From: Dimorphilus gyrociliatus
Lineage: Eukaryota; Animalia; Annelida
Direction of reading: 5' to 3'
Assembly (NCBI GenBank): GCA_904063045.1
Contig: CAJFCJ010000001.1
Location: 1,054,001-1,118,000, forward strand
Length of the DNA: 64,000 nt
Positions 37,482-52,129 of this stretch are shown here, piece by piece. Both the position numbers and the translations under genes were made by a program. Under the pieces are notes generated by a model. That model had not been told where the DNA came from, made no database searches, and saw nothing but the letters and a program-made list of their open reading frames with translations. Numbering within the stretch: the first letter of the stretch is position 1; each line of letters starts with the position of its first letter.

Positions 37482-40400
37482 ATGAAGGAGGAGAAAATTC
37501 ATTCCCAAAGTACAATTTCACAATTCGACAATCATGTGGTTAAAAAGGCAAAAATTCTAAAAACTAGCAGCTGGCTGTCGCAAACTTGTACTGTTTTTTT
37601 CCTGGTTTGTCATATGAAGATTCACAAATGGAAAAGTTTCATAAAGGAAGTTGTTTATTCGATCGGTGGCGCTCTTGTACTACTAATTTTCTCCCAAAAT
37701 CTAAAGTCAACGCATATACAGGAATTTTACGATGTTGACAGGGAAATTCAACCATTGGAGGTATCTATTGACAAAAATTGGCATTGGTAAAGAATGGATA
37801 AAAAGAGTTCTAATAATATAAAACCCTTAGGTAAGAGGATTACTGATATCTCCCAACACAACAGTCATCAGATCTTTTATCAAGTCAATAAACTTAGATA
37901 TTCTAAGGTTAAAAGAATTCACTTATATGAACGAAAGTCAATTTGAAAGTATAAAGAACTTTAAAGAAAAGACAGCCATAATCTTCCATAACTTGTCTAC
38001 TGATTGTATAAGTTATACCATCCGAATGCCTGCTTGGAAGATTGCTTCAACCAATCTAAAGTCATGGAATTCTTTGAGTAACTACTGTAGTGAAAAGAGA
38101 AGGACGTCTCCGTCCGAATGTCCAACTGATTCGTACATTCGTTCAGGATTTTTGCACTTGCAACACGGAATTTCATTGCAGTTTCTAAAAAAATTAGGCT
38201 AGTCATTCTTTTACTTCTCATTCTTTAAAAAGGAAAATTTAACCTTAAATTATCTTTCTCTCTCCTCATCTTCTTCTTCTTAAATGTTACATTACATTAC
38301 AGCTAGGAAGAGGGGACTTACAATTAAGTTATCACTTCAAAGATTTCCCAAATCAGAATATGTGCATATTTCAAATAACTTATATCTAGTTCAAATTCTC
38401 CTTACTTTAATAATATTATTAAATTTTGGTTTGTTAATGAGGCATTTAGCTTCTGAACTGGCATCGGGCTTCGAAAGATCTCCAAAAATCTATTCATTTA
38501 CTAACTCGCTAAGACCGTCGAGTTACTGGACAGCTAGAATCTTAGCTATTGTCATCTTTCTTCAACCGGCTGCACTTATTATATCTATCTTCCTTAGTGT
38601 TCTTAAAACTTTTGAGCAACGGATTGCATTTCATATATCATTATTTATGTCCTTTTCTATTACAATGGCAAGTCTCTCCGCATTAATAGCAAACTTAGTC
38701 AGGAGTCCAGCCAAAGTAAATTCATTTGTTATTGGATTTATCTTTACTATGGTATGGCCATTTCTTATTGTTGCTGTTTATCCTACTTTAACTGAAGCGT
38801 TTCCTTTCTATCGTAAATGGTTTATTGTCACCACTCCCTTAAGCGTATTTGCAGCTGGATTTTACCAGGTCAATTTATAAATAATTAAATAATTAAGCCT
38901 CTTTTTTTTATTCTTAGCTCTCCTTCCTTAATAGATTCTTACTAGTATTTGTTTAAATAAGAAGCTCTACTGGACGGAAGGGGATTTTCCGGTTTTACTC
39001 TGCATCTCCTGCCATATTATTTATGGCATTTTACTACTTTTAGTTGTGATTTGCATGGAGAATTTTACGGATAATAGAAGGACTAGAATAGTTTGGAAGA
39101 GAGTGTGTTCCTGTTCAAATATTACTTGTCAAACCAACGAAGAGATTACCTTAGATGAGAAGGGCGACCAAAACATTATATGGTACGTTTCTGAGTTAAT
39201 TCATAAAGTTCCCTTGTAATTCACCGTTTGAAATTCAATGCCTTCTTTTTTTAAGCTTGAGGAATGTTTCAATGATTTATAAGAAAATAGGGCAAAGGAG
39301 GGTTACTGCTCTTGAAGATCTTAATCTAAGACTAACTGAAGGTAAGATAATGGTTCTCTTCGGTCATTTGAACTCCGGAAAGTCAACTTTAATTCGTATC
39401 ATTTCGGGAAGAGAGAGGCCAACATCTGGTAAAGTAATCTTCCATGGTTACAACTGGCCTTCAGATATTTACAAGGCTATCGCAACTATACCGGAAAGAT
39501 CGGATCTGTATGATTGGTTAACGCCGTACGAAATACTAAAGTATTACGCTAGAATTAGAAATGTAGACATAGTCGATCAGCATTTATTAATAGAAAATCT
39601 CTTGTTAGAATTAGGTAGGACTATTATTTGTTTATTAACGTTTTAGAGCGTAAATTCTATCAAACAGCCATTATGGACGTAGCCCATTCACCTATTTATG
39701 AGTTGAGTAAACATGATGAAAAGAAATTAAGAATAAGCCTAGCTTTAATAGGTCATTCTAAAGTTCTATTACTCGATGAACCCCTTCTTAGCTTAGATCT
39801 AAATGGAAGAAGAGCTGTTTGGCAGCTGTTAAAAAAGCACAAAAAGGGCAAAATTATTCTAGGTCTGTGGGAGACATACTTATATCCTTTCAGTTTTTTC
39901 TTTATATTCTATCCTATTTCTTATTCTTTTCTATCAATAAAATACTTTTTAGTTACAACGCAATTTATGAATGAAGCAAATCTATTCTGTGATGAAAAAG
40001 GCATTCTCTATAGGGGCAAAATTAAATATTGGGGTACAACGGACCGTTTAAATGACATATTCAAATTAGGATACTTAATTAAGTTTGTTTAAGAAGGATA
40101 TATTAAATCTTACTTGTAAACGTATTTTTCTTCTTTAAATTATAGGTTTAACTTGATAAATGATAGTGAAATTGACGAATTACATCAAGTTGTGGAACAG
40201 AATGCACCAGACGCTAAATTACAAGCCAGAAGCCAAAATTATCTTTGCTATAGAATACCAAAATCAAAAATTGATCAAATTTCTCTTCTCTTTTCAAAAT
40301 TAGAATCAAATTCTAGTCATTCTAATCAAGATTCTAGTTTATTGAATAAGGCGTCTTGGTCATCCGATAGGTGTCAGACTAGCAGGTATATTGCAATTTT

Positions 40401-43400
40401 ACTTTTAAAGTGTTTACTTTTTTTCTGCTTTCTAAATAGACTTAACTCCTCTTGGGCTGAACCAAATATTGAACATATGAGAGATGATTTAGAGTTGAAA
40501 GACTTTATAAGATTTGCTAAGAGAACCATTATTGAAGAAGCTAGAATTCCATACTCGAAAACTGTAGCAGCTTCATTTAAAATTCACAACTGTTCCGTTA
40601 CTTTAATAACGTTTGAGAGCTGTATCTCTCAGATTCTTGTTGAGGAAGCTAATCCATTTGAATCTAGGACTCGACTTTCCGAAGAGATGAAAAGGATAAG
40701 TTGGGCCAGGAAAACATATCATTCGACTGATGATCCTGGTCTCTTAGACGATGTTTTAGATGGTAAAGGATTGATAGATAGTCCACCAACTATGCACACA
40801 GATGGGGAAATGTCTGAAGAGTCTGGAACTTCATACCAAAAGTTTCGACATCAGGTTCAAAAAATTTGGTGGAACGGAGAGAGAGTGCCATTTTTTTACG
40901 CTCAAATTCAACGATTGATATTTCTTTTGTTGGCTAATATCCAGTCCGATTTTTATCCATCTCTATTATCGATTGGTCTTTTAGTAATCCCGGTTTGTTT
41001 TATCTGGTTGGGATTAATAATTGAAACTTGGTATCCAATAAACGAACCTAAATCGGACAGCCTAAAAATTGATTCTTTCATTTACAATTCAAGACCATTA
41101 TTAATAAATTCACCTAAGCGTCTTCCAAACTATCTCATGGATTCGTTAGCGAACGCATCCGGTATAAGATTGACCAAATTTTTCAGATATGATATAACAG
41201 ATATAAGAAATATAAAACCGCAAGCTTATGGCCTAGATTTTAATGATTTTTTACTTAGTAAAAATGGCAGTATTAGAACAGAAGTAGCTTTAAACTTTAA
41301 CGACTCAGAAGTTCATTCTCCCGCTATTGTTCATAGAGCTTTGATGGGAGGGTTAGCTGGAGTTATAACGAATGGTCGTTTAAATTCCTCTAATATAATT
41401 GTTAACAGTCACCCATGGAAAGAAGAAAGATCTTTCTTCGAAGATCACGCACATCTATCTGCTACAATTTTAGTTAATTTCATGATTGGTCTACTACCAG
41501 CGTTAAGCTTGAAACGTTTGGTTCAGCAAAATCAAATTCGAATAAGATTGACATTACTAGGGATAAACCGCATAGTTTTCTGGTTAATGACATTAATTAC
41601 GGATTTAAGTGAAATTTTTCTCATATTCGCTTTATTTGGTTTCTTGATAACGTCTTTTCTTGATCAGAATTTCACAATACAACGCTTTTTATTGTTGGGA
41701 TGTAAAATTTGTTCAACTTTACCCTTTGCGTATATTGTTTCCTTTTGGATAAAAAATTTTGGTGATGCTGTTTTCTATTGCGTCGCTTTAACTACGTCTC
41801 TAATTCTTCCTACGTTTACATTATTACTGTTTCTATTATGGGAAAGGGAGGACTTATCACTTATAGTTGTTGCTATCTCTTCTCTTCTAATCCCTCAATT
41901 TCACATTTCAGATCAGCTTGCAATTTATTTATCATTAAAACTGGATAATGTGACCTTTTCCTATATTCTTTTCATATCTCTTGGACCAACTATAATTCAC
42001 TTAATTGGTTTTCCATTTTTTATTCATCTACTTGAATTGAAGAGAGCTTTCGGCATGGAATGGAAGAGATCGTTATTTATTACTTTGGGCCTGAAAAAGG
42101 TAGAAGTTGATGCTACAAACGATACACAATGGGATACCGAAATTTTAGATAAAGATATAAAGACGGAATATATGACAGTTGAAAAGTGGCGGAAATACGA
42201 AAACAGAGAATCAACAGCTGCAGTAGTATTAAATAATGTTAGCAAGTTTGAAAAGGATTCCTATGTAGATAATATATCTCTGTACCTAAAGAATTCTGAC
42301 ATTTTTGGTCTAATAATGCCTAAAACTTCAAAGAGTACTATCTTATTTGATATAATTAGTGGACAATCGACAATCGACTTTGGGGAAGTTTTCATAGACG
42401 ACATATTGCTGTATAGTGGAAAAACTGATTTACTTCCATGTAATCCGAATTTATTAAAGAAAGAACTGCTCGCTGTTTCTCCTGCAAAAGGTGCTTTTAT
42501 ACCCTGTCTAACAGTCATTTCAAATATCCAATTATTTGCAAGACTAACTGGCTATCCTAATAAGAATCTTAGGGAAGTTACCGATTTCTTTCTTGAGGTT
42601 TTCTCTTTAAAGCAGCAAGCTGATACAAGAGCATGCTTACTTGAGAGAGACTCGAAAGGATCGCTAAATCTCTGTATAACTCTTCTACAAAGACCAAAGA
42701 TTTTGATACTAGACGATCCTTTCTTTGGGATGAGTAATAAGACTATTAAAACTATGAAAAGTATACTTAAGGTATTCGTTGAAGTTGGTCGAATGACAGT
42801 CCTTATGTCGGCTAGAAGCTTGCAGGAAGTCGAATCATTTTGTACAAAGATTGCATTTATGAATAATGGCCGCTTTTTTAGTATTGGAACTATAGATTCT
42901 TTGAGAAAAAAACACAGTAGAGGAAAGCAATTAAAGTTTAGACTAAAAGAAAATTTTACACTAGAGCAATCACTTCAGATTCAAGCTCTTATCCTTGAAA
43001 TTATCCCTGAGGCTATAATCTCGGAACAATATAGTAATTTCATAGTTTTCAATATTCCAGAGGATAACGGAGTGAATTACGGTGTATTATTCAAATTGCT
43101 CGAATTAAGTAAAAGTATAATTCAATACGAATCATTCGAAGTTTGTCAAAATTCTCTTGGTCGAATGTTTTGCCAATTTGTGTAAGTTTTTTTTTAATCA
43201 AAGCGAATGATACAGTCTATGTAAATTACCACAATTGTCTTTCTTTTTCACTAATAAGCTACCACTCAAAACAAACTGAAGGAGTTGAAAGGAGAAGTGG
43301 GAAGAAGAGAAACATAGTTACTAATGCAACAAAGATAATTCCAGCTAAAGATATGCTATTTAAGAGTATTTCTGGAATTGAACCCTTGAATCGTCGTAGA

Positions 43401-44010: not shown

Positions 44011-47000
44011 ATGCAAACTTCTCCACTCAGGATTCGTCGTCTCAGATCCCCAAATGGCTTACAAGATTATAGGAACCAGAGAATTGACAGAAGAACTGGC
44101 CGGACAAATACAATACATGGTCTAGATAAAGTTTTCGATTTTGAATCATCACCTTTACGTAGGTAATGTATCATTTATTTCTTTTGTTATTAAAAACAAC
44201 AAAGATCATCGCTATCTCGAAAGAATATCTATTTAACTTTTTGCTTATGAGAGGATGAAAACAAAATTGCTTTCATTAAGTATAACTTGTTATCATAAGA
44301 GAAATAGGCCTAAATTAAATCCTGAGGGCACTTTAGCATTTAAAAAAGAAAATTAAAGACCACGAAACATTTGGCACTCAAGAAAAAATGCCGACTGCAA
44401 AATATTATGCTGCTTCAGTTAGCAGCTTCGTTAGAACCGCTTTGTTAAATAGAAACCAGCGTTTAACGGTAACGAGGCGTCCCTCGAGTAGAGGCAACCC
44501 GGGTTCGTAATGACGCTTCTATTTTTTAGAATATTTTGGGCGTCCCTTCTCCTCGTTTCGACCGCCTTCTTCTTCTTCTTAGCTGCAAATTCCGTCCGAA
44601 AATATGCAACCGCCGTCCGAATTAGAAGAACAATCGTTGAGCATAGGAAAACGTTCCCGTCTCCTTTTTTAAGTATCTGCCAGGCGTCTTTGCGGTTGAG
44701 TAGCATTTATAATTCTCATCTTATCAAGAAGAATGCGATTGTCGATGAACTAATGGCGGTGGGAGCACATCGGCAAGTCGACACCATTCTCCAGTAAGAT
44801 TGATTAAATAAGTGGCCTCAGTAAACTTTTCAAATTGACCGTCATATTTATGGAAATGCAGGTGCCAGACCGAAGGCTCCGAATGCAAATGGAAAACTAC
44901 GAGTAGCCAAGCAGGAATCTGCTTTACTACACCACTCCATAAAAAAGGTTCATATTCTAATCTCTTAATACATCACCGATAAGGATTATCTTTAATCCAG
45001 GTTTATCATTATTACTTAATGCTGAATCTTATGAAAATTCCCCCGTCGAACTCGGCAACAAGGGTTTGAAAATGTATGTTGGCGAAAGAGAGCCTATATT
45101 GGCTTACCGAAATGCTCTAAGCTTGATCCCTGGACGACAATTCAGCGTCGGAGCGACACCGATAATTTACGATTCAACAGAGTGTTCTGAAAAGTCTGAA
45201 AAATGCTTGGCTGCTTGTTTAATCGAACATCAGAAGAAGGATTGCGCATGCGCCGAACCATTCTCAAAACTTTTAGGTCTCAACATATATTTTTATATCA
45301 TTTTACATATGTATATTGACATCTAATATCTCTAAGCGTTCTTGACAAGCGGTTTATCTGTTGATAGATGAACGGGTTCCCATCTGCAATCTATCTACTT
45401 ATCGAACTTGTATCTCTCGCGTAAATAGTAAGTATACTACTGGAGTCATTTCGTGATTAATCACGTGACTAACCTTTAAATACCGTTTACTACACGCTTT
45501 TTTCAATTTTCTCAACTTAACCGTTTCCCATGTTAATAATTTTCTTTCATATGATAATTTCTCTAAGAGACGAACAGATCTTCTTTCTCTCCCCTTTTTT
45601 TTCTCCTCCATTTTTTTATCCTATCGCACTCTAAAAGATTTGCGGCTTGTCACATAAATTGAGTGTCTGATGGTTCTTGTCATGTGAACATCTCTAAAAA
45701 ACAACACCCGTTGCAATCTATCATCTTTATAGCGTTCCAACTACAAACTCGGCCTGTAAAATGGAATACTTTCGCGCGCGATTGCAAACAGCAAATTGCC
45801 CTTTAAAAAGATAAACAACGCTAGCTTAACCCGGTTTATTTACGTTTCTCGCAGAGAATTGGCGTCCAAGATGTTCTTGTAAGAAAGCTTGCCGAAATCT
45901 TTCTTTCAAACTTCGATCATTATCAGTCGACGCGTTCTCTCGACCGGAAGTCGACGAATTGTTGGAAACTGGAGAAAGGCTTGAAGCGGGTTTTAGGACA
46001 GCTTTAGGTGTTAGAGATAAACTAAATAATTTAGATGACGACACAAAGGACTTTCGTCACCTTAAAGAATCGTTTGATATTAGTATAGCCGCCTTTGATA
46101 ACGCCATGCACAAGTTAAATAAAACAAGAAAGAAATTAAGGAAGTTAGCGGATGAAATAGAGAGAAGATCGGATTTCCACAAATTCCACACAAAACAAGA
46201 GCAGAAAACTCTAATTCGTGATGAAATTTTAGCACCTTGGTGGAGTTACCGCGAAAAATATCTTAATAAATTCGAATACAACGCTAACCAGGCTGCAATT
46301 GATTTCAATTCGAGTATCCAAGTGCTTTTGTCAAAGAAGAGTCGAACAACCAAAGAAATATCCGCTGCCATTTCCAAGAGAACATTGACATTAACAAGGA
46401 TGATGGCCCAAAACGCCATAACGAAAATGGTGTCTTTCATCTCGCTTTTAACTAAACGTAAGGAGGTGTCTAATGCTTTACTACCATTCGACGCGTTAAG
46501 AAAAATCCATAACCAGACATTAATCAACTCCATTAACGAGTGCCTTATGCAAGTTGTAATCTCCGCCTCCAAAGCCCTAACCCTCACAAATAAGGCCGAT
46601 GTGGAACCTTCAAATTATAGCAAAAAAAATGCTAGCGACGCTCAAATCTGTATTTCTATGATGATGAAAAATAGTAGGGCTTTATCAATTTTGAAATATA
46701 AATTAGAAGAGAGCTTTACCAACTTCGATAGAGACTTAAAATCATCCGATAGCACTTTGGAAGATAAAAGTAATTCAGTTAGACGTCTATTAGGTAATTT
46801 CTTACAAAAATCAAATTCTATTGAAGAGTTATTTAATAAATTAAAATTACGATTAAATACGGATGTAAGAAATTTTATATTGGAATATCAAAATTATACG
46901 AAGAACTATCACCTGACTAAATTAAATATTAAGGTTAAAGGTATTTCAAACTTTGAATTTGACACTCAAAATATTTTAACGGAGTGGAAATTGAAAAGCG

Positions 47001-47788
47001 ATAACCTCTTAGAAGTAGTAACAAAATTTGGCGACCGCCTAACGTCTCTTTGGCGTCTAATTCAGGCGGACGGTAACACGAAAACCTATTACGAAAGAAT
47101 CTCGGCCGATATCGACAATCTGAATTATTCATCAAAAGAGGCGATACAACTAGCTCGATTAGCCCGCTTTGACGCTCCAGACGCTCAAAGGATTCCAAAA
47201 GCCGAATGGAAGAGCAGATTAAATGCCGATGTGGACAAGCTAGATGACAATTTAAAACGAGTCCGATCAACTCTAGATGGCGTTCGTCGATTAGCAAAAA
47301 ATGATATATTTTTGAGGTCCAGCGTCTCTTTCGCCAAGACATTGCGATTGGTGGAGGCGAAATTGAGAAAATTCGCCGAGAAATGCGAACTGTCAGGCGA
47401 ATTTATAAGGTAATTTATATTCATTATCCGCGCATATTCTATAGGCGAGTTTCTTTTTTATCTAGGCAAAATCTCGTCCAAGTTGATGTTCATCTAGAAG
47501 ACTATGTCGAGAGAATTAGGGAGGTGTGGGATTATGAATGGACAGACTTAATATGTAAGAATGAAATTAGCACATGTTTTCATCGACTAATTACATTTAA
47601 TCAACTAAACAGGCGACATTGGGGGCTGCCTAGCATTACTTCTTGGAGCGAGTGCTTTATCTATGGTCGATCTTTTCGATTATTTATTATTTCGCAGACG
47701 GAACAAAGAGCATGAAAGGCGTCTAAACGACGTCGAATTTAGTCCTAAAAAAACAGAGAATAAGGCTGATTGTGCAACTGAAGTTTGA
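44011..47788 (+). CDS. DEG/ENaC channel subunit 1 (885 aa); exons 44011-44162, 44530-44793, 44862-44947, 45001-45276, 45368-45427, 45855-47409, 47466-47554, 47613-47788
   Basis: N-terminal TIHGL motif, TM1 RIFWASLLLV, FPSPFLSIC, GICFT, GLSLLLN, Cys-rich thumb ending CSCKKAC, beta11 NLVQVDVH, TM2 CDIGGCLALLLGAS. Exons sum to 2658 nt in one open frame. Confidence 0.88.
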
Positions 47789-49327
47789 TTTTGACGTAAC
47801 CGGTGCTCTCTACGTCATATTTTTTTATGTGCCTGATAGAAATCGAACAAGCTTTTTTACTCAATCATTCCGATTTGTTTGGATGATTTACAGCTTAGCG
47901 AGATTTAGACGTCTGTTTATATAGACAACTGTTAGAATTTCATGATTACGTGCACTTTTTGTATACAGTATAATTTCTCCTGTTATTTTTTTCCTATACA
48001 AATACGCCATCTGTGTGTAACAGCTATAAAAAAAAATCATATCTTTTCTCTCCCACTCCCCCGTCTAATTCTTACAAAGCGATTCTTTCCGCCCCCTGCC
48101 ACCCCCTTCGTCAAGAAACTATAGTATAGAATGAAAATTTAATCAGAATTTGTATTATTTTTCAATTTATTTCTTGTATTCAATTTGTAAAGGAAATTTC
48201 CTTTTCTTTATCATTTTGAGCAAAAAGAAAGCAACCTTTATGATATTTATAGTAATTATCATTTTTCTTTCTCATCATTTTTCGTCATCTTTTTCTTGTC
48301 CCTTCCTCTAATTATCTTCAATTAGTAATATAACTATATAGTGAAAAATTCACAATATTAGTTAATTTCAGGGACGGAAGGCGTTAAATTTCCACTTTCC
48401 TTTATTTATAAACAAATTGATTAATATTTAATACGATAATACACAGCTTACTAATTAATTCATAAATACTTTAATAAAAAAATTGTTTACGAACCGAAAA
48501 TCAATATAATAAACAAAAGGAAAAATATTTCCTCCTTTCGCAGCTTTCTTTCTTTCCAGGAAAAAAGTAAGAAACAAACTAGTTAGGTCAATTTTTCTTT
48601 TCCAAAATATTTTTCTCATCTCTCTCTCTCTCCTTAACCTAACCCTTCCTCTGAAAAGAGAAATGATGGAAAATGAATAAACAACTTAATTGATTCTACC
48701 ATCTGAGGAGATGCTACTAATAAGATATTTTCTGTATAAATAAACAAGACAAAAATGTCTAGATAATTAAACGTGGTGAAAATAAGTACGTTATAAGACA
48801 CCATTGTATAAACAGCTTCTATCAATTATCTAAAAATAATGTTTAAACTACATTTATACTTTTGTTTATCAACGGATAGAAACGTTACACTCATATTTAA
48901 GTTCTCCCAATAATAAACTCATGATTGACTAATTGTTCAACAGTTCGATATGATTAATTTATTCATAGATCGCTTTTTTAGGATTTGTGAGAATTGTTAC
49001 ACGAAAGTTAGAAAGAAGAAATGTAGGAGATTATTAAAGTCTTATGGTTTCATTACGAAAATGGTTCTTCTCTCTTAGAGTTATATCCTTTCAAGGGTTT
49101 TATTGATATTGGATGTCAATTGATAAACTACACTCTGGCGATTCTAAATTGATATTTATAATTTATTAAGCGAAATTCTATGCCGCTAGGCGGAGTGGAA
49201 ACCACTGAATAGATATGGCGCTTTTGCGTTGTGAACATCCTTCATGCATATTTCATATAGAAAAAATGTCCATTGTTTGTACAAACCGGATTTATTAATG
49301 TGTTTTTTTTTTTAAATATTTGCTTAC

Positions 49328-52129
49328 ATGATTACCTTGAAGCCACCAGACTCGATGTCAGATAACGGCCGATTAGCAATGTCTAACGGAAACAATATCG
49401 AAAGTCACACAGATAATTTGAAGTTAGATTTTCCATCCATGCTAGATGATGAAGATGTTACTTGTTCAACTGAATTAAAAGCATCTTTTTCCAATTCATC
49501 ATTTCATGGAATCCCAAGAATTTATGGTAGAAAGTCACCAATAATTTGCAAATTCTTTTGGTTCCTTGTTACGATAATGGCATGTGGAATATTTTGTTTT
49601 TCAACTTATACATTAGTAAGCCATTACCTTGAGTATCCAACAAAAACAACTGTCAAACCGTATAATAATATATTACCAATATCGATATGCATAAAAAATG
49701 GGTAAGTATTTTTCCAAAAGAAGAGCAAACTCGTGTTAAGAATATTAATATATTGTTTTTTATGGTAAAAACATTTTCTTTTTTTAGAGAAAACGTGACA
49801 AATTCGAAATCATTCAATGAATCTTTCAGGTAATTTAAAATTAATCATCGAATTTTTATTATATTATTCTCTTCCCTATATAAAGATGTTTAATAAGAGA
49901 AACATTCGAAAATTGTAACATATCGAAGGGAACGGCTAATTGCTATAAAATTTCATTAAAAGACAGTATGTTGCTAACAATTGTTTATATATACTGTATA
50001 AAATTAAGGCGTCGTTTTTTTTAATAATATAGGGTTTACAGTGGATATAATAACATACAATAATATAGAATTATATATTCACCACGATTCTGGAGAAATA
50101 TGGAACAAAATTTCGAAACACGAAACATGCGAGATGGAATACTTAAAAGTAAGATGTTCAATCTATAGACTATTTAAAAAAGATACTATATCATGTAAGC
50201 CTATTGGAAACACACAGTATTAACATATGACAAACAATGTTAATGATATTCTTATTATATTTATATACAGTATGTAATTAATTCTATACATTGAGGTTTA
50301 TACCTAAAAGAGTTAACATTAAAATGTTGCACTTTGAATAGTCAGAATGTCCAGCAAAATATGGATAATTAACTCTTCTGTAAAAAAACGCATAACAATA
50401 GTCTAGCTATAATCTATTATCTGTAATAAAGCATAATTATATACCCGTTTATTTGTGCATATTTTTACATTTTTCTCATTGTCATTACACTTTTAAACAA
50501 TACGTTTCTTTTGTTTATAAATTGATTAATTAATTAATGCTTTAATACTAATTATGTTTCTTTTTTACCTTGTATATTATGAAAAGATTTCTTTTTCTGT
50601 TGAAATTTAGATTTTACGACTAGACGCTCCTTATGGATCATGCTCGAATAAAACCTGTAAACAGATAATAGTTAAAAACTACTGCAATAGCCGGTCCATT
50701 GACATTGCTGATTTATCTGCAATTTATTCAAATGCCACTAGATTGAAACTGGAAGTGGTGCAGAAAGATCTCTATAACGATTCCTTTAACAATTGTCAAA
50801 GAGAAATGAATCGTTTAGATGATTTCCTCTCTAAATACAATCTAAAATTAACTAACCGATGGAATTTTCACCATTCTATGCTTCAGCTACAACAAGTATA
50901 TTTTAATGAAAATTTTATTGAAAAGTGGAAGGTTAACTATCCCAATTGGGAGAAATTTTTCAATGATAAGTTAACTTTTGAGTACTATATTAACGTGTCG
51001 AAAATAGATGATGTTGTATTGGATAAAGATTTCATCAAAAACTTTATGTATATCTTTGTATTATCGAAAAAATTAATGATTAATCAAACATTTCAATTTA
51101 ATCATATTTTTGAAATGAATGATAAGGATACAAATGAGAAATATGAACAAAGTCTTCTAAGAAACGTCCTAAATAATTTTAATAATGAAAATTCTAAAGA
51201 TAAAGAAAAGATTAATCAATATATAAATATTTTGAAAATATTCTTTCAAGATATTGAAAATACAGTTCAGAATCAAGTTGAAGATTTTTATAATGAATTT
51301 CATAGTTTAGTTACAAGAGTTTTAAATTTTCATTCAAATTTATTAATGAAAGAAAAATCTATTAATGATGAATCTACTTACAAAAAGGAAATTGATAAAT
51401 TCAAAGTTACAGAAGAGAATTATCTAATTGAATTTAAACGGCTATTGGTGTTACATGAACCAGATTCTCTCAATAAACTAACAGAATTAATTAATAAGTA
51501 TGATATACAATCCGAAAAACTCTGGAATTTAACAAAAAAACATTATGGAACAATTCTAAAAGATTTTTATAGACATTTGGAAGACGATGTTTTCGAATAT
51601 TATAATACAAATGAACAGAGTCAAAGGGAGAAACTTTTAATTGGCTTTTCTAAATTGACCAACATTGATAAAGACATTCTGAAAACCTATGATAAATCAA
51701 GAATTTATAGTACATTAAATTATATGAGGTCTACAACACTGGATAAATTAACAAGTCATTTAAAACCGTTTAATGACGAATGTTTGAAATTAGTTGAAAA
51801 GCGAAAAGAATCTAATTACAAGTGAGCTTTGTGTTATATTAAAAATGTTTATTTTTAAATTTTTATTCAAATAGCGGCATGTCAATTATGACAATATTAA
51901 AACGACCTAGTTTTCTTTTCGAGGAAGAAGCAGAATTGACCCTTCAAGATCTATTAAGTAAATAGACTTTATTATTGATTTATAAAACAATATCAAAATT
52001 TTATTATGTACAGGAAACATTGGAATATATATGGTCATCTTCCTGGGAGCAAGCATTTTATCCTTAATAGAAATACTCGACTTTTTCTGTTCAGCCCCCT
52101 GTCGGATTGCCTACAATAAACGATATTAA
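49328..52129 (+). CDS. DEG/ENaC channel subunit 2 (673 aa); exons 49328-49701, 49788-49829, 49886-49965, 50033-50148, 50611-51821, 51875-51957, 52014-52129
   Basis: FSNSSFHGIPRI, TM1 KFFWFLV..HYLEYPTKT, NCYKI, LDAPYGSC, TM2 RNIGIYMVIFLGASILSLIEILDF. Exons sum to 2022 nt in one open frame. Confidence 0.85.

Follow-up and report, generated by a model that had tools for sequence, protein, structure and literature searches.

A helical domain in the knuckle of a DEG/ENaC subunit

A stretch of 64,000 nucleotides from Dimorphilus gyrociliatus (Annelida; GenBank assembly GCA_904063045.1, contig CAJFCJ010000001.1, positions 1,054,001 to 1,118,000 of the forward strand), referred to below as the window and numbered from its first letter, was analysed computationally. 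Judged from its sequence, a gene in this window, here called gene A (44011-47788, + strand), encodes a subunit of the DEG/ENaC channels with approximately 489 residues built into the knuckle, which is the membrane-distal tip of the subunit between strands beta10 and beta11. The apex of the channel trimer carries in these residues a domain that is integral, extracellular, helical, glycosylatable and strongly conserved. As far as the database and literature searches reach, no description exists of an orphan helical domain of this size (about 490 residues) in the DEG/ENaC knuckle.

The gene A protein displayed two Kyte-Doolittle hydropathy peaks above 1.5, at amino acids (aa) 49-67 (the first transmembrane segment, TM1) and 824-842 (the second, TM2), with none between them. 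A His-Gly motif, TIHGL, was found at aa 34-38, and exon 8 was observed to encode DIGG followed by LGASALS, containing the G-x-S filter. Fourteen cysteines were counted between TM1 and the insert, which equals the conserved extracellular set in number; in ASIC1, the 14 conserved extracellular cysteines form seven disulfides. Exons scanned singly matched colinear parts of the Pfam family ASC (PF00858, 455 positions), namely positions 22-80 (exon 2, 19.7 bits), 205-318 (exon 4, 17.9 bits) and 433-455 (exon 8, 15.6 bits). Taken separately, these matches all stay below the 23.6-bit cut-off of the family, and their rough sum is about 53 bits. With the TM2 region as a 52-aa query, the best sequence matches in the PDB were ASIC2 and ASIC1, with E values of 0.06-0.15. 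The extracellular core ahead of the insert is short, approximately 230 aa.

Position of the insert in the channel fold

A first reading of the window, which was made from the letters alone and is called here the sequence-only reading, had placed about 500 aa, encoded by one exon of 1.55 kb, between the last thumb cysteines and beta11. Measurement gave 502 aa between CSCKKACRNLSF, which ends at aa 297, and NLVQVDVH, which begins at aa 800, all of them from a single exon of 1555 nt (45855-47409). The first part of this long exon (45855-45940, + strand) encodes a strand resembling beta10 and the last thumb cysteines (C-x-C-x3-C), by which the 14 extracellular cysteines outside the insert are completed; the remainder is the insert proper (45941-47409, + strand; aa 309-797). 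The next exon opens with NLVQVDVHLE, and DIGG follows 30 residues on. Both this spacing and the pattern presumably match the beta11-beta12-preTM2 region of ASIC1, which we take to read NILVLDIFFE ... DIGG. In ASIC1, the segment from thumb to beta11, consisting of beta10 and two knuckle helices, is only about 36-40 aa long.

The sequence-only reading had also described the domain as replacing the knuckle. The flanking motifs bear out the position between beta10 and beta11, and the word replacing probably goes too far. The insert exon ends in SGEFIRQN, which is similar to what we take to be the end of the second knuckle helix of ASIC1 (SEQYIGEN). Because of this likeness, which hints at a remnant of a knuckle helix, the extra residues look, on sequence grounds, as if they were probably inserted within or between the knuckle helices rather than exchanged cleanly for the knuckle. 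Exon-sized queries of gene A yielded no match in the PDB and thus no alignment to ASIC at the edges of the insert.

Exon structure and RNA support

The exon structure of gene A was defined with contigs of the RNA run X9, which were 100% identical to the window. All exons are on the + strand. Exon 1 (44011-44162, 152 nt, a length also found in the ortholog described below) carries the start codon, the cytoplasmic N-terminus and the His-Gly motif, and was joined to exon 2 in an X9 contig. Exon 2 (44530-44793; ASC match with E 4.9e-4) encodes TM1 and the start of the extracellular domain. Exon 3 (44862-44947) was bounded by the GT..AG joints 44793>44862 and 44947>45001, and it is followed by exon 4 (45001-45276; ASC match with E 1.7e-3), encoding the central extracellular domain with thumb cysteines. 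Exon 5 (45368-45427) is only 60 nt long and encodes two thumb cysteines; its joints are 45276>45368 and 45427>45855, the latter leading into the long exon. After the long exon, exon 7 (47466-47554) encodes beta11-beta12 of the palm, and its joints 47409>47466 and 47554>47613 were found both in X9 and in the marine metatranscriptome X3. The coding part of exon 8 (47613-47788) encodes the DIGG motif, TM2, the G-A-S filter and the C-terminus, with the stop codon at 47786-47788; the 3' untranslated region (3'UTR) extends past 48300.

In total, seven GT..AG introns were removed in the X9 contigs (44163-44529, 44794-44861, 44948-45000, 45277-45367, 45428-45854, 47410-47465 and 47555-47612). Exons 1-4 were all contained within one X9 contig, and another (contig 17, 2458 nt) started at the long exon's first base and extended across beta11/beta12 and TM2, including exon 8, into the 3'UTR. 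The long exon is a single open frame with its AG acceptor at 45853-54 and its GT donor at 47410-11. The depth at joint 45427>45855 was 50 in X9, and the long exon was included in the dominant assembled mRNA form. Of the words sampled from the long exon, 100% were present in X9, and of those sampled from the whole gene A region 75%, which is approximately the exonic share. RNA contigs of relatives shared the gene A joints without gaps (X8, about 90% identical; X1, about 93%; X3, about 99%).

The spliced exons formed an open reading frame of exactly 885 aa, the length given in the sequence-only reading, and the assignment of the 1.55-kb exon to the channel mRNA was borne out by RNA contigs, both from this organism and from relatives, in which the joints on either side keep the frame. 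The length of the long exon is not divisible by three, and skipping it would shift the frame and lead to a stop at aa 290, ahead of TM2; therefore, no productive isoform of gene A can lack it. The sequence-only reading had named skipping of this exon, or its belonging to a separate gene, as what would overturn the proposal; what was found is that the exon is included in the RNA contigs and that its skipping breaks the frame.

Words of gene A were also found in marine and coral metatranscriptomes (runs X3-X7), among which X3, the one run whose contigs were aligned to the window, gave contigs up to about 99% identical with the same joints. Therefore, the animal or a very close relative lives in such habitats.

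Properties of the insert

The maximum 19-residue hydropathy of the insert was 1.02. It is thus without a membrane segment and therefore on the extracellular side, like its flanks. AlphaFold2 models built with alignments of two and four sequences consisted of about 90% helix, arranged in roughly ten to twelve helices, some of which were 80-120 residues long. A hydrophobic periodicity was detected at 3.5 residues (z=6.6) and at 3.6 residues (z=5.2), and none at 2.0 and 4.0. In a blind scan for heptads, 8.4% of the 28-residue windows passed, as compared with 0.4% in shuffled sequences, and none of 300 shuffles reached 8.4%. Seven overlapping heptad-like stretches were obtained in this way, falling into about four regions. 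The helical character proposed in the sequence-only reading is thus reproduced by both the models and the significant 3.5-3.6-residue periodicity, and the two heptad-like runs that it had singled out were recovered among the top windows of the blind scan.

The same reading had called the segment almost free of cysteine. Only three cysteines (aa 509, 545 and 790) were counted in the 502 aa between thumb and beta11, and those at aa 509 and 790 are kept in the ortholog. Eight N-x-S/T sequons are present in the insert, six of them kept in the ortholog. The net charge is +21 (+17 in the ortholog), and charged residues are the best-conserved class, being 84% identical. Dibasic sites number 13 across the whole gene A protein. 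No furin-type site (R-x-K/R-R) was found inside or beside the insert, only one minimal R-x-x-R, and with no furin consensus inside the insert nothing points to its excision.

A similarity was also observed within the insert, between aa 527-613 (46595-46855) and aa 697-783 (47105-47365), with a Smith-Waterman z of 3.4; 3 of 300 shuffles reached the score. The pattern common to the two similar segments is AD....NYS.K.A ... STL(E/D) .. VRRL .. FL..S. This internal similarity is weak, and at the sequence level it hints at an old internal duplication.

Conservation of the insert and synteny

The only relative of the insert in the databases was protein P0001, which is 78% identical and was found in three Logan assemblies. 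The contig that carries it, L001 (29.9 kb), is syntenic with the window, having an ABC transporter gene, gene A, gene B (see below) and a gamma-tubulin-complex gene. The gene A ortholog of this contig, which encodes 881 aa, agrees with the window in the length of every exon but the long one, where it is smaller by 12 nt. Comparison with the ortholog by the Nei-Gojobori method gave for the insert a nonsynonymous divergence (dN) of 0.116 and a synonymous divergence (dS) of 0.93, with dN/dS 0.125 over 485 codons. For the gene A coding sequence outside the insert, dN/dS was 0.159. On the strength of these two ratios, selection at the sequence level is seen to hold the insert as tightly as the channel core.

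Synonymous divergence was uneven along the insert. In its last third dS was 0.48, as compared with 1.2-1.6 elsewhere, and a stretch of about 100 nt (47050-47150) was 96-98% identical in DNA, with its synonymous sites frozen too. This stretch could be an exonic regulatory or RNA-structure element, if its sequence conservation is taken as a guide.

Blocks of non-coding DNA in gene A were 92-100% identical to L001 despite a dS of about 0.9 at the synonymous sites of the gene. They are located at 44300-44529 (the 3' half of intron 1), 45300-45450 (the flanks of exon 5), 45650-45854 (the final 200 nt of intron 5, directly before the insert exon) and 47750-47950 (including part of the 3'UTR). Exon 5 itself, 60 nt long, had zero differences to this relative and was 100% identical together with its flanks. 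These blocks may be splicing or other regulatory elements; an Rfam scan of the conserved intron blocks gave no match.

Gene B and the origin of the insert

Downstream of gene A and in tandem with it lies a second DEG/ENaC gene, here called gene B (49328-52129, + strand), for which a model of 673 aa in 7 exons was predicted, with AG/GT at every boundary and an open frame. The open frame needs an exon of 80 nt (49886-49965), which was recognised through its counterpart in L001 (14155-14234). Taken alone, exon 1 of gene B passes Pfam ASC (39.6 bits, E 4.4e-10), and the TM2 of this gene also matches the family. The long exon of gene B (50611-51821, + strand) encodes 403 aa, in which the last thumb cysteines come first and about 370 aa of insert follow at the same site as in gene A. 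It ends in phase 2 just before beta11, and the intron there is in the same phase as that of gene A. Ahead of the insert, the extracellular core is much reduced, to about 130 aa, so the insert makes up most of the outer domain of the protein. The long exon and the insert of gene B were 44% identical to those of the ortholog in L001, with a dN of 0.43 and saturated synonymous sites for the insert.

The inserts of genes A and B (inserts A and B) both contain heptad-like segments and were each other's best match in the six-frame translation of the window. They were colinear over nearly their whole length in Smith-Waterman alignments, with a marginal z of 2.5-4.1 and forward scores of 85-98 as compared with 60-70 for reversed controls. 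When the test was limited to residues kept within each ortholog pair, z was 3.76, and 5 of 1000 shuffles reached the score. An alignment of the four A and B inserts keeps several rare landmarks (R..FH, W, EK(Y/F)(L/F)N..FE, LW and a Cys near the end). Taken together at the sequence level, these results suggest that the insert was probably acquired once, before the tandem duplication that gave genes A and B, after which it would have diverged fast.

Searches for relatives of the insert

A Pfam scan assigned the insert to no family. The best score in the ESM Atlas search was only 0.63, and a profile search of the PDB gave nothing credible. The best PDB match, a MAPK14 chain (E 0.046), was rejected, the HKFH region of the insert having been aligned to a poly-histidine stretch at the start of the chain. 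Foldseek with the insert model, which is of low confidence, gave no match in the PDB at E<=0.001. Matches to ciliary microtubule inner proteins, designed bundles and MSP1 all had E>0.1 with a model of pLDDT (predicted local distance difference test) 46, and no meaning was attached to them.

A HMMER search with the insert over 1.84 billion representative proteins returned the ortholog and one other protein, P0002. The latter (E 1e-4, 11 stretches) is a repeat protein of 2862 aa with fibronectin-III and leucine-rich repeats, and was taken as a chance match boosted by repeats. No relative of the insert was found in the JGI metagenomes, and protein searches with insert B and with a profile of all four A and B inserts added no relatives. 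Full-text searches of the literature yielded no description of a large helical knuckle domain in the DEG/ENaC family. The sequence-only reading had conceded that a match to an already characterised domain would undo its proposal; no match to a described domain appeared in Pfam, PDB or HMMER.

Proposed function and alternative explanations

For the role of the insert, we tentatively favour an extracellular arm that would bind something outside the channel and pass force or occupancy to the palm. This reading, reached by analogy, is favoured because the knuckle influences the gating of ENaC and because a glycan on the knuckle of alpha-ENaC is needed for activation by shear force. Since both ends of the insert must re-enter neighbouring palm strands, its helices would most likely form an antiparallel bundle, elongated in shape and projecting from the membrane. 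Above the channel, the trimer would thus bear three arms of this kind or a single crown formed jointly. The arms would bind material of the matrix, glycocalyx or cuticle, a neighbouring protein or a ligand, and pull or occupancy at the knuckle would be transmitted through beta10/beta11 to the palm and from there to the gate. For mechanosensitive DEG/ENaCs an extracellular tether has been postulated, and such an arm would be a form of it that is covalently part of the channel. In a stricter form, the insert would be a gating tether proper, with the arms or a trimeric stalk linking the apex to the matrix or cuticle and pulling the palm via beta10/beta11. We consider this form doubtful; if true, gene A would encode the first DEG/ENaC with the long-postulated 'force-from-filament' tether inside the channel polypeptide itself.

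Several observations weigh against these interpretations. The RNA support consists of short-read contigs joined in a chain and not of single molecules. An unspliced X9 contig runs across intron 5 (45398-45884) at a depth of 16, as compared with 50 for the spliced form; retention of this intron leads to a stop at aa 289, and the unspliced form was also present in the relatives X1 and X8. The confidence of the AlphaFold2 models was low, with mean pLDDT 46.5 and 45.2 and pTM (predicted template modelling score) 0.34 and 0.25 for the two- and four-sequence alignments, respectively, the addition of the gene B inserts bringing no gain (pLDDT 45.2); therefore, any bundle, stalk or crown is conjectural. 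Insert B, which is uncharged, changes approximately 3.7 times faster than insert A, and this makes one binding function common to A and B doubtful. In addition, neither BLASTP (E 2.4) nor hhalign (probability 0.14%) gave significant homology between the two inserts.

Alternatively, the helical arms of the three subunits might associate with one another above the channel and so determine subunit composition, for instance a combination of A and B, in which case the insert would be a domain for assembly or stabilisation and not a sensor. DEG/ENaCs are indeed trimers, heptad-like segments occur in both inserts, and the tandem paralogs have very different inserts. Fast divergence between paralogs along with conservation between orthologs would fit a specificity code. 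However, clean heptads were found in only 8% of the windows scanned, and canonical DEG/ENaCs assemble without any such domain, and we regard an assembly crown as unlikely. A distinctly unlikely explanation is that the insert is a passive spacer or shield, that is, a folded and glycosylated helical domain adding height or bulk for reach through a coat, protection or localisation without a role in gating. The extracellular location, the conserved sequons and the lack of a catalytic or binding motif agree with such a role, and the knuckle tolerates loop insertions in placozoan channels (PMC6827283); however, a mere spacer should need less constraint than is seen here (dN/dS 0.125 over 485 codons, charged residues being conserved best), and the knuckle is coupled to ENaC gating (Na+ self-inhibition, as cited in PMC6827283).

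Post-translational processing, by which the insert would be cut out or shed like the inhibitory tracts of ENaC and act as a released factor or an autoinhibitory plug, appears very improbable. It has a precedent in ENaC, where proteolytic maturation of an extracellular insertion is established, and the dibasic sites across the protein could be cited in its favour. The single minimal R-x-x-R is the nearest approach to a furin site inside or beside the insert, however, and the subunit would no longer be a single chain after a cut between beta10 and beta11, but two. The explanation to which we give least credence, and which the data contradict, is an artefact: the real channel would lack the long open reading frame, which would instead form a gene of its own, derive from a transposon or have been joined to the channel exons by mistake. 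The insert has no homolog beyond one close relative and some retention of intron 5 occurs. However, in spliced RNA contigs of this organism and of two or more relatives the exon is connected in frame to both of its neighbours, its skipping destroys the frame, the insert is under purifying selection in a locus of conserved synteny, and the long exon itself carries the last thumb cysteines and beta10.

Genomic context

The window is AT-rich, gene-dense eukaryotic DNA with short introns. These traits, together with the marine and coral metatranscriptomes, had raised the idea of a placozoan TadNaC gene, which nothing bore out; a compact annelid genome (such as that in 10.1101/2020.05.07.078311) would suit them as well. 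Gene A is preceded by an ABCA-type transporter gene and followed by gene B, downstream of which lies a gamma-tubulin-complex gene. The transporter gene (39628-43185) was present as a single open exon of about 1010 aa, with a match to the ABCA1 R1 regulatory domain and a weak match to ABC_tran.

Significance and comparison with known channels

DEG/ENaC channels are used to learn how protons, peptides or force acting on an extracellular domain lead to opening of the pore, and what the extracellular tether of their mechanosensitive members consists of has yet to be settled. A naturally occurring subunit with a conserved module of about 490 residues on its knuckle would provide a handle for the tether question, as the module can be deleted, swapped or pulled. 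It also indicates that the trimer apex can carry a domain larger than the remaining extracellular region, which bears on channel engineering. For annotation, it implies that gene predictors may split or truncate such genes. In addition, a strongly constrained orphan domain in this position exemplifies the origin of a large new domain within an ancient protein fold.

In canonical ASIC1 and ENaC, the knuckle consists of two short helices, alpha6 and alpha7, between beta10 and beta11. The gene A protein resembles these channels in having two membrane helices, the His-Gly motif and 14 extracellular cysteines outside the insert, and it keeps the C-x-C-x3-C end of the thumb, the spacing from beta11/beta12 to DIGG and the G-A-S filter. 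It differs from them in its distance of 502 aa from thumb to beta11, as compared with about 36-40 aa in ASIC1, and in its short core of about 230 aa before the insert.

The GRIP domain of ENaC and the extra extracellular regions of nematode MEC-4 are family-specific additions on the finger side. Like the insert, they are lineage-specific extracellular additions to a conserved trimeric core, and modulation of gating is established for them. Unlike the insert, which is situated in the knuckle, helical, nearly free of cysteine and without furin sites, they are located at the finger, far smaller, and rich in beta structure or cysteine.

Placozoan channels (TadNaC) have smaller loop insertions in the knuckle region, which forms the upper vestibule and can influence gating (PMC6827283). 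The same region of the fold accepts extra residues in both cases. The placozoan insertions are small, unstructured loops in homology models, whereas gene A has about 490 helical residues with conserved cysteines and sequons.

A possible parallel in function is offered by alpha-ENaC, in which the N-glycan on N511, at the top of the knuckle, is needed for the response to shear force through the matrix (bioRxiv 10.1101/102756; PMC7958617). In both channels, the site atop the knuckle is one where an extracellular link feeds gating in ENaC and would do so in gene A, and the insert has six conserved N-x-S/T sequons. The tether of ENaC is a glycan on a knuckle of normal size, whereas that proposed for gene A would be a whole protein domain.

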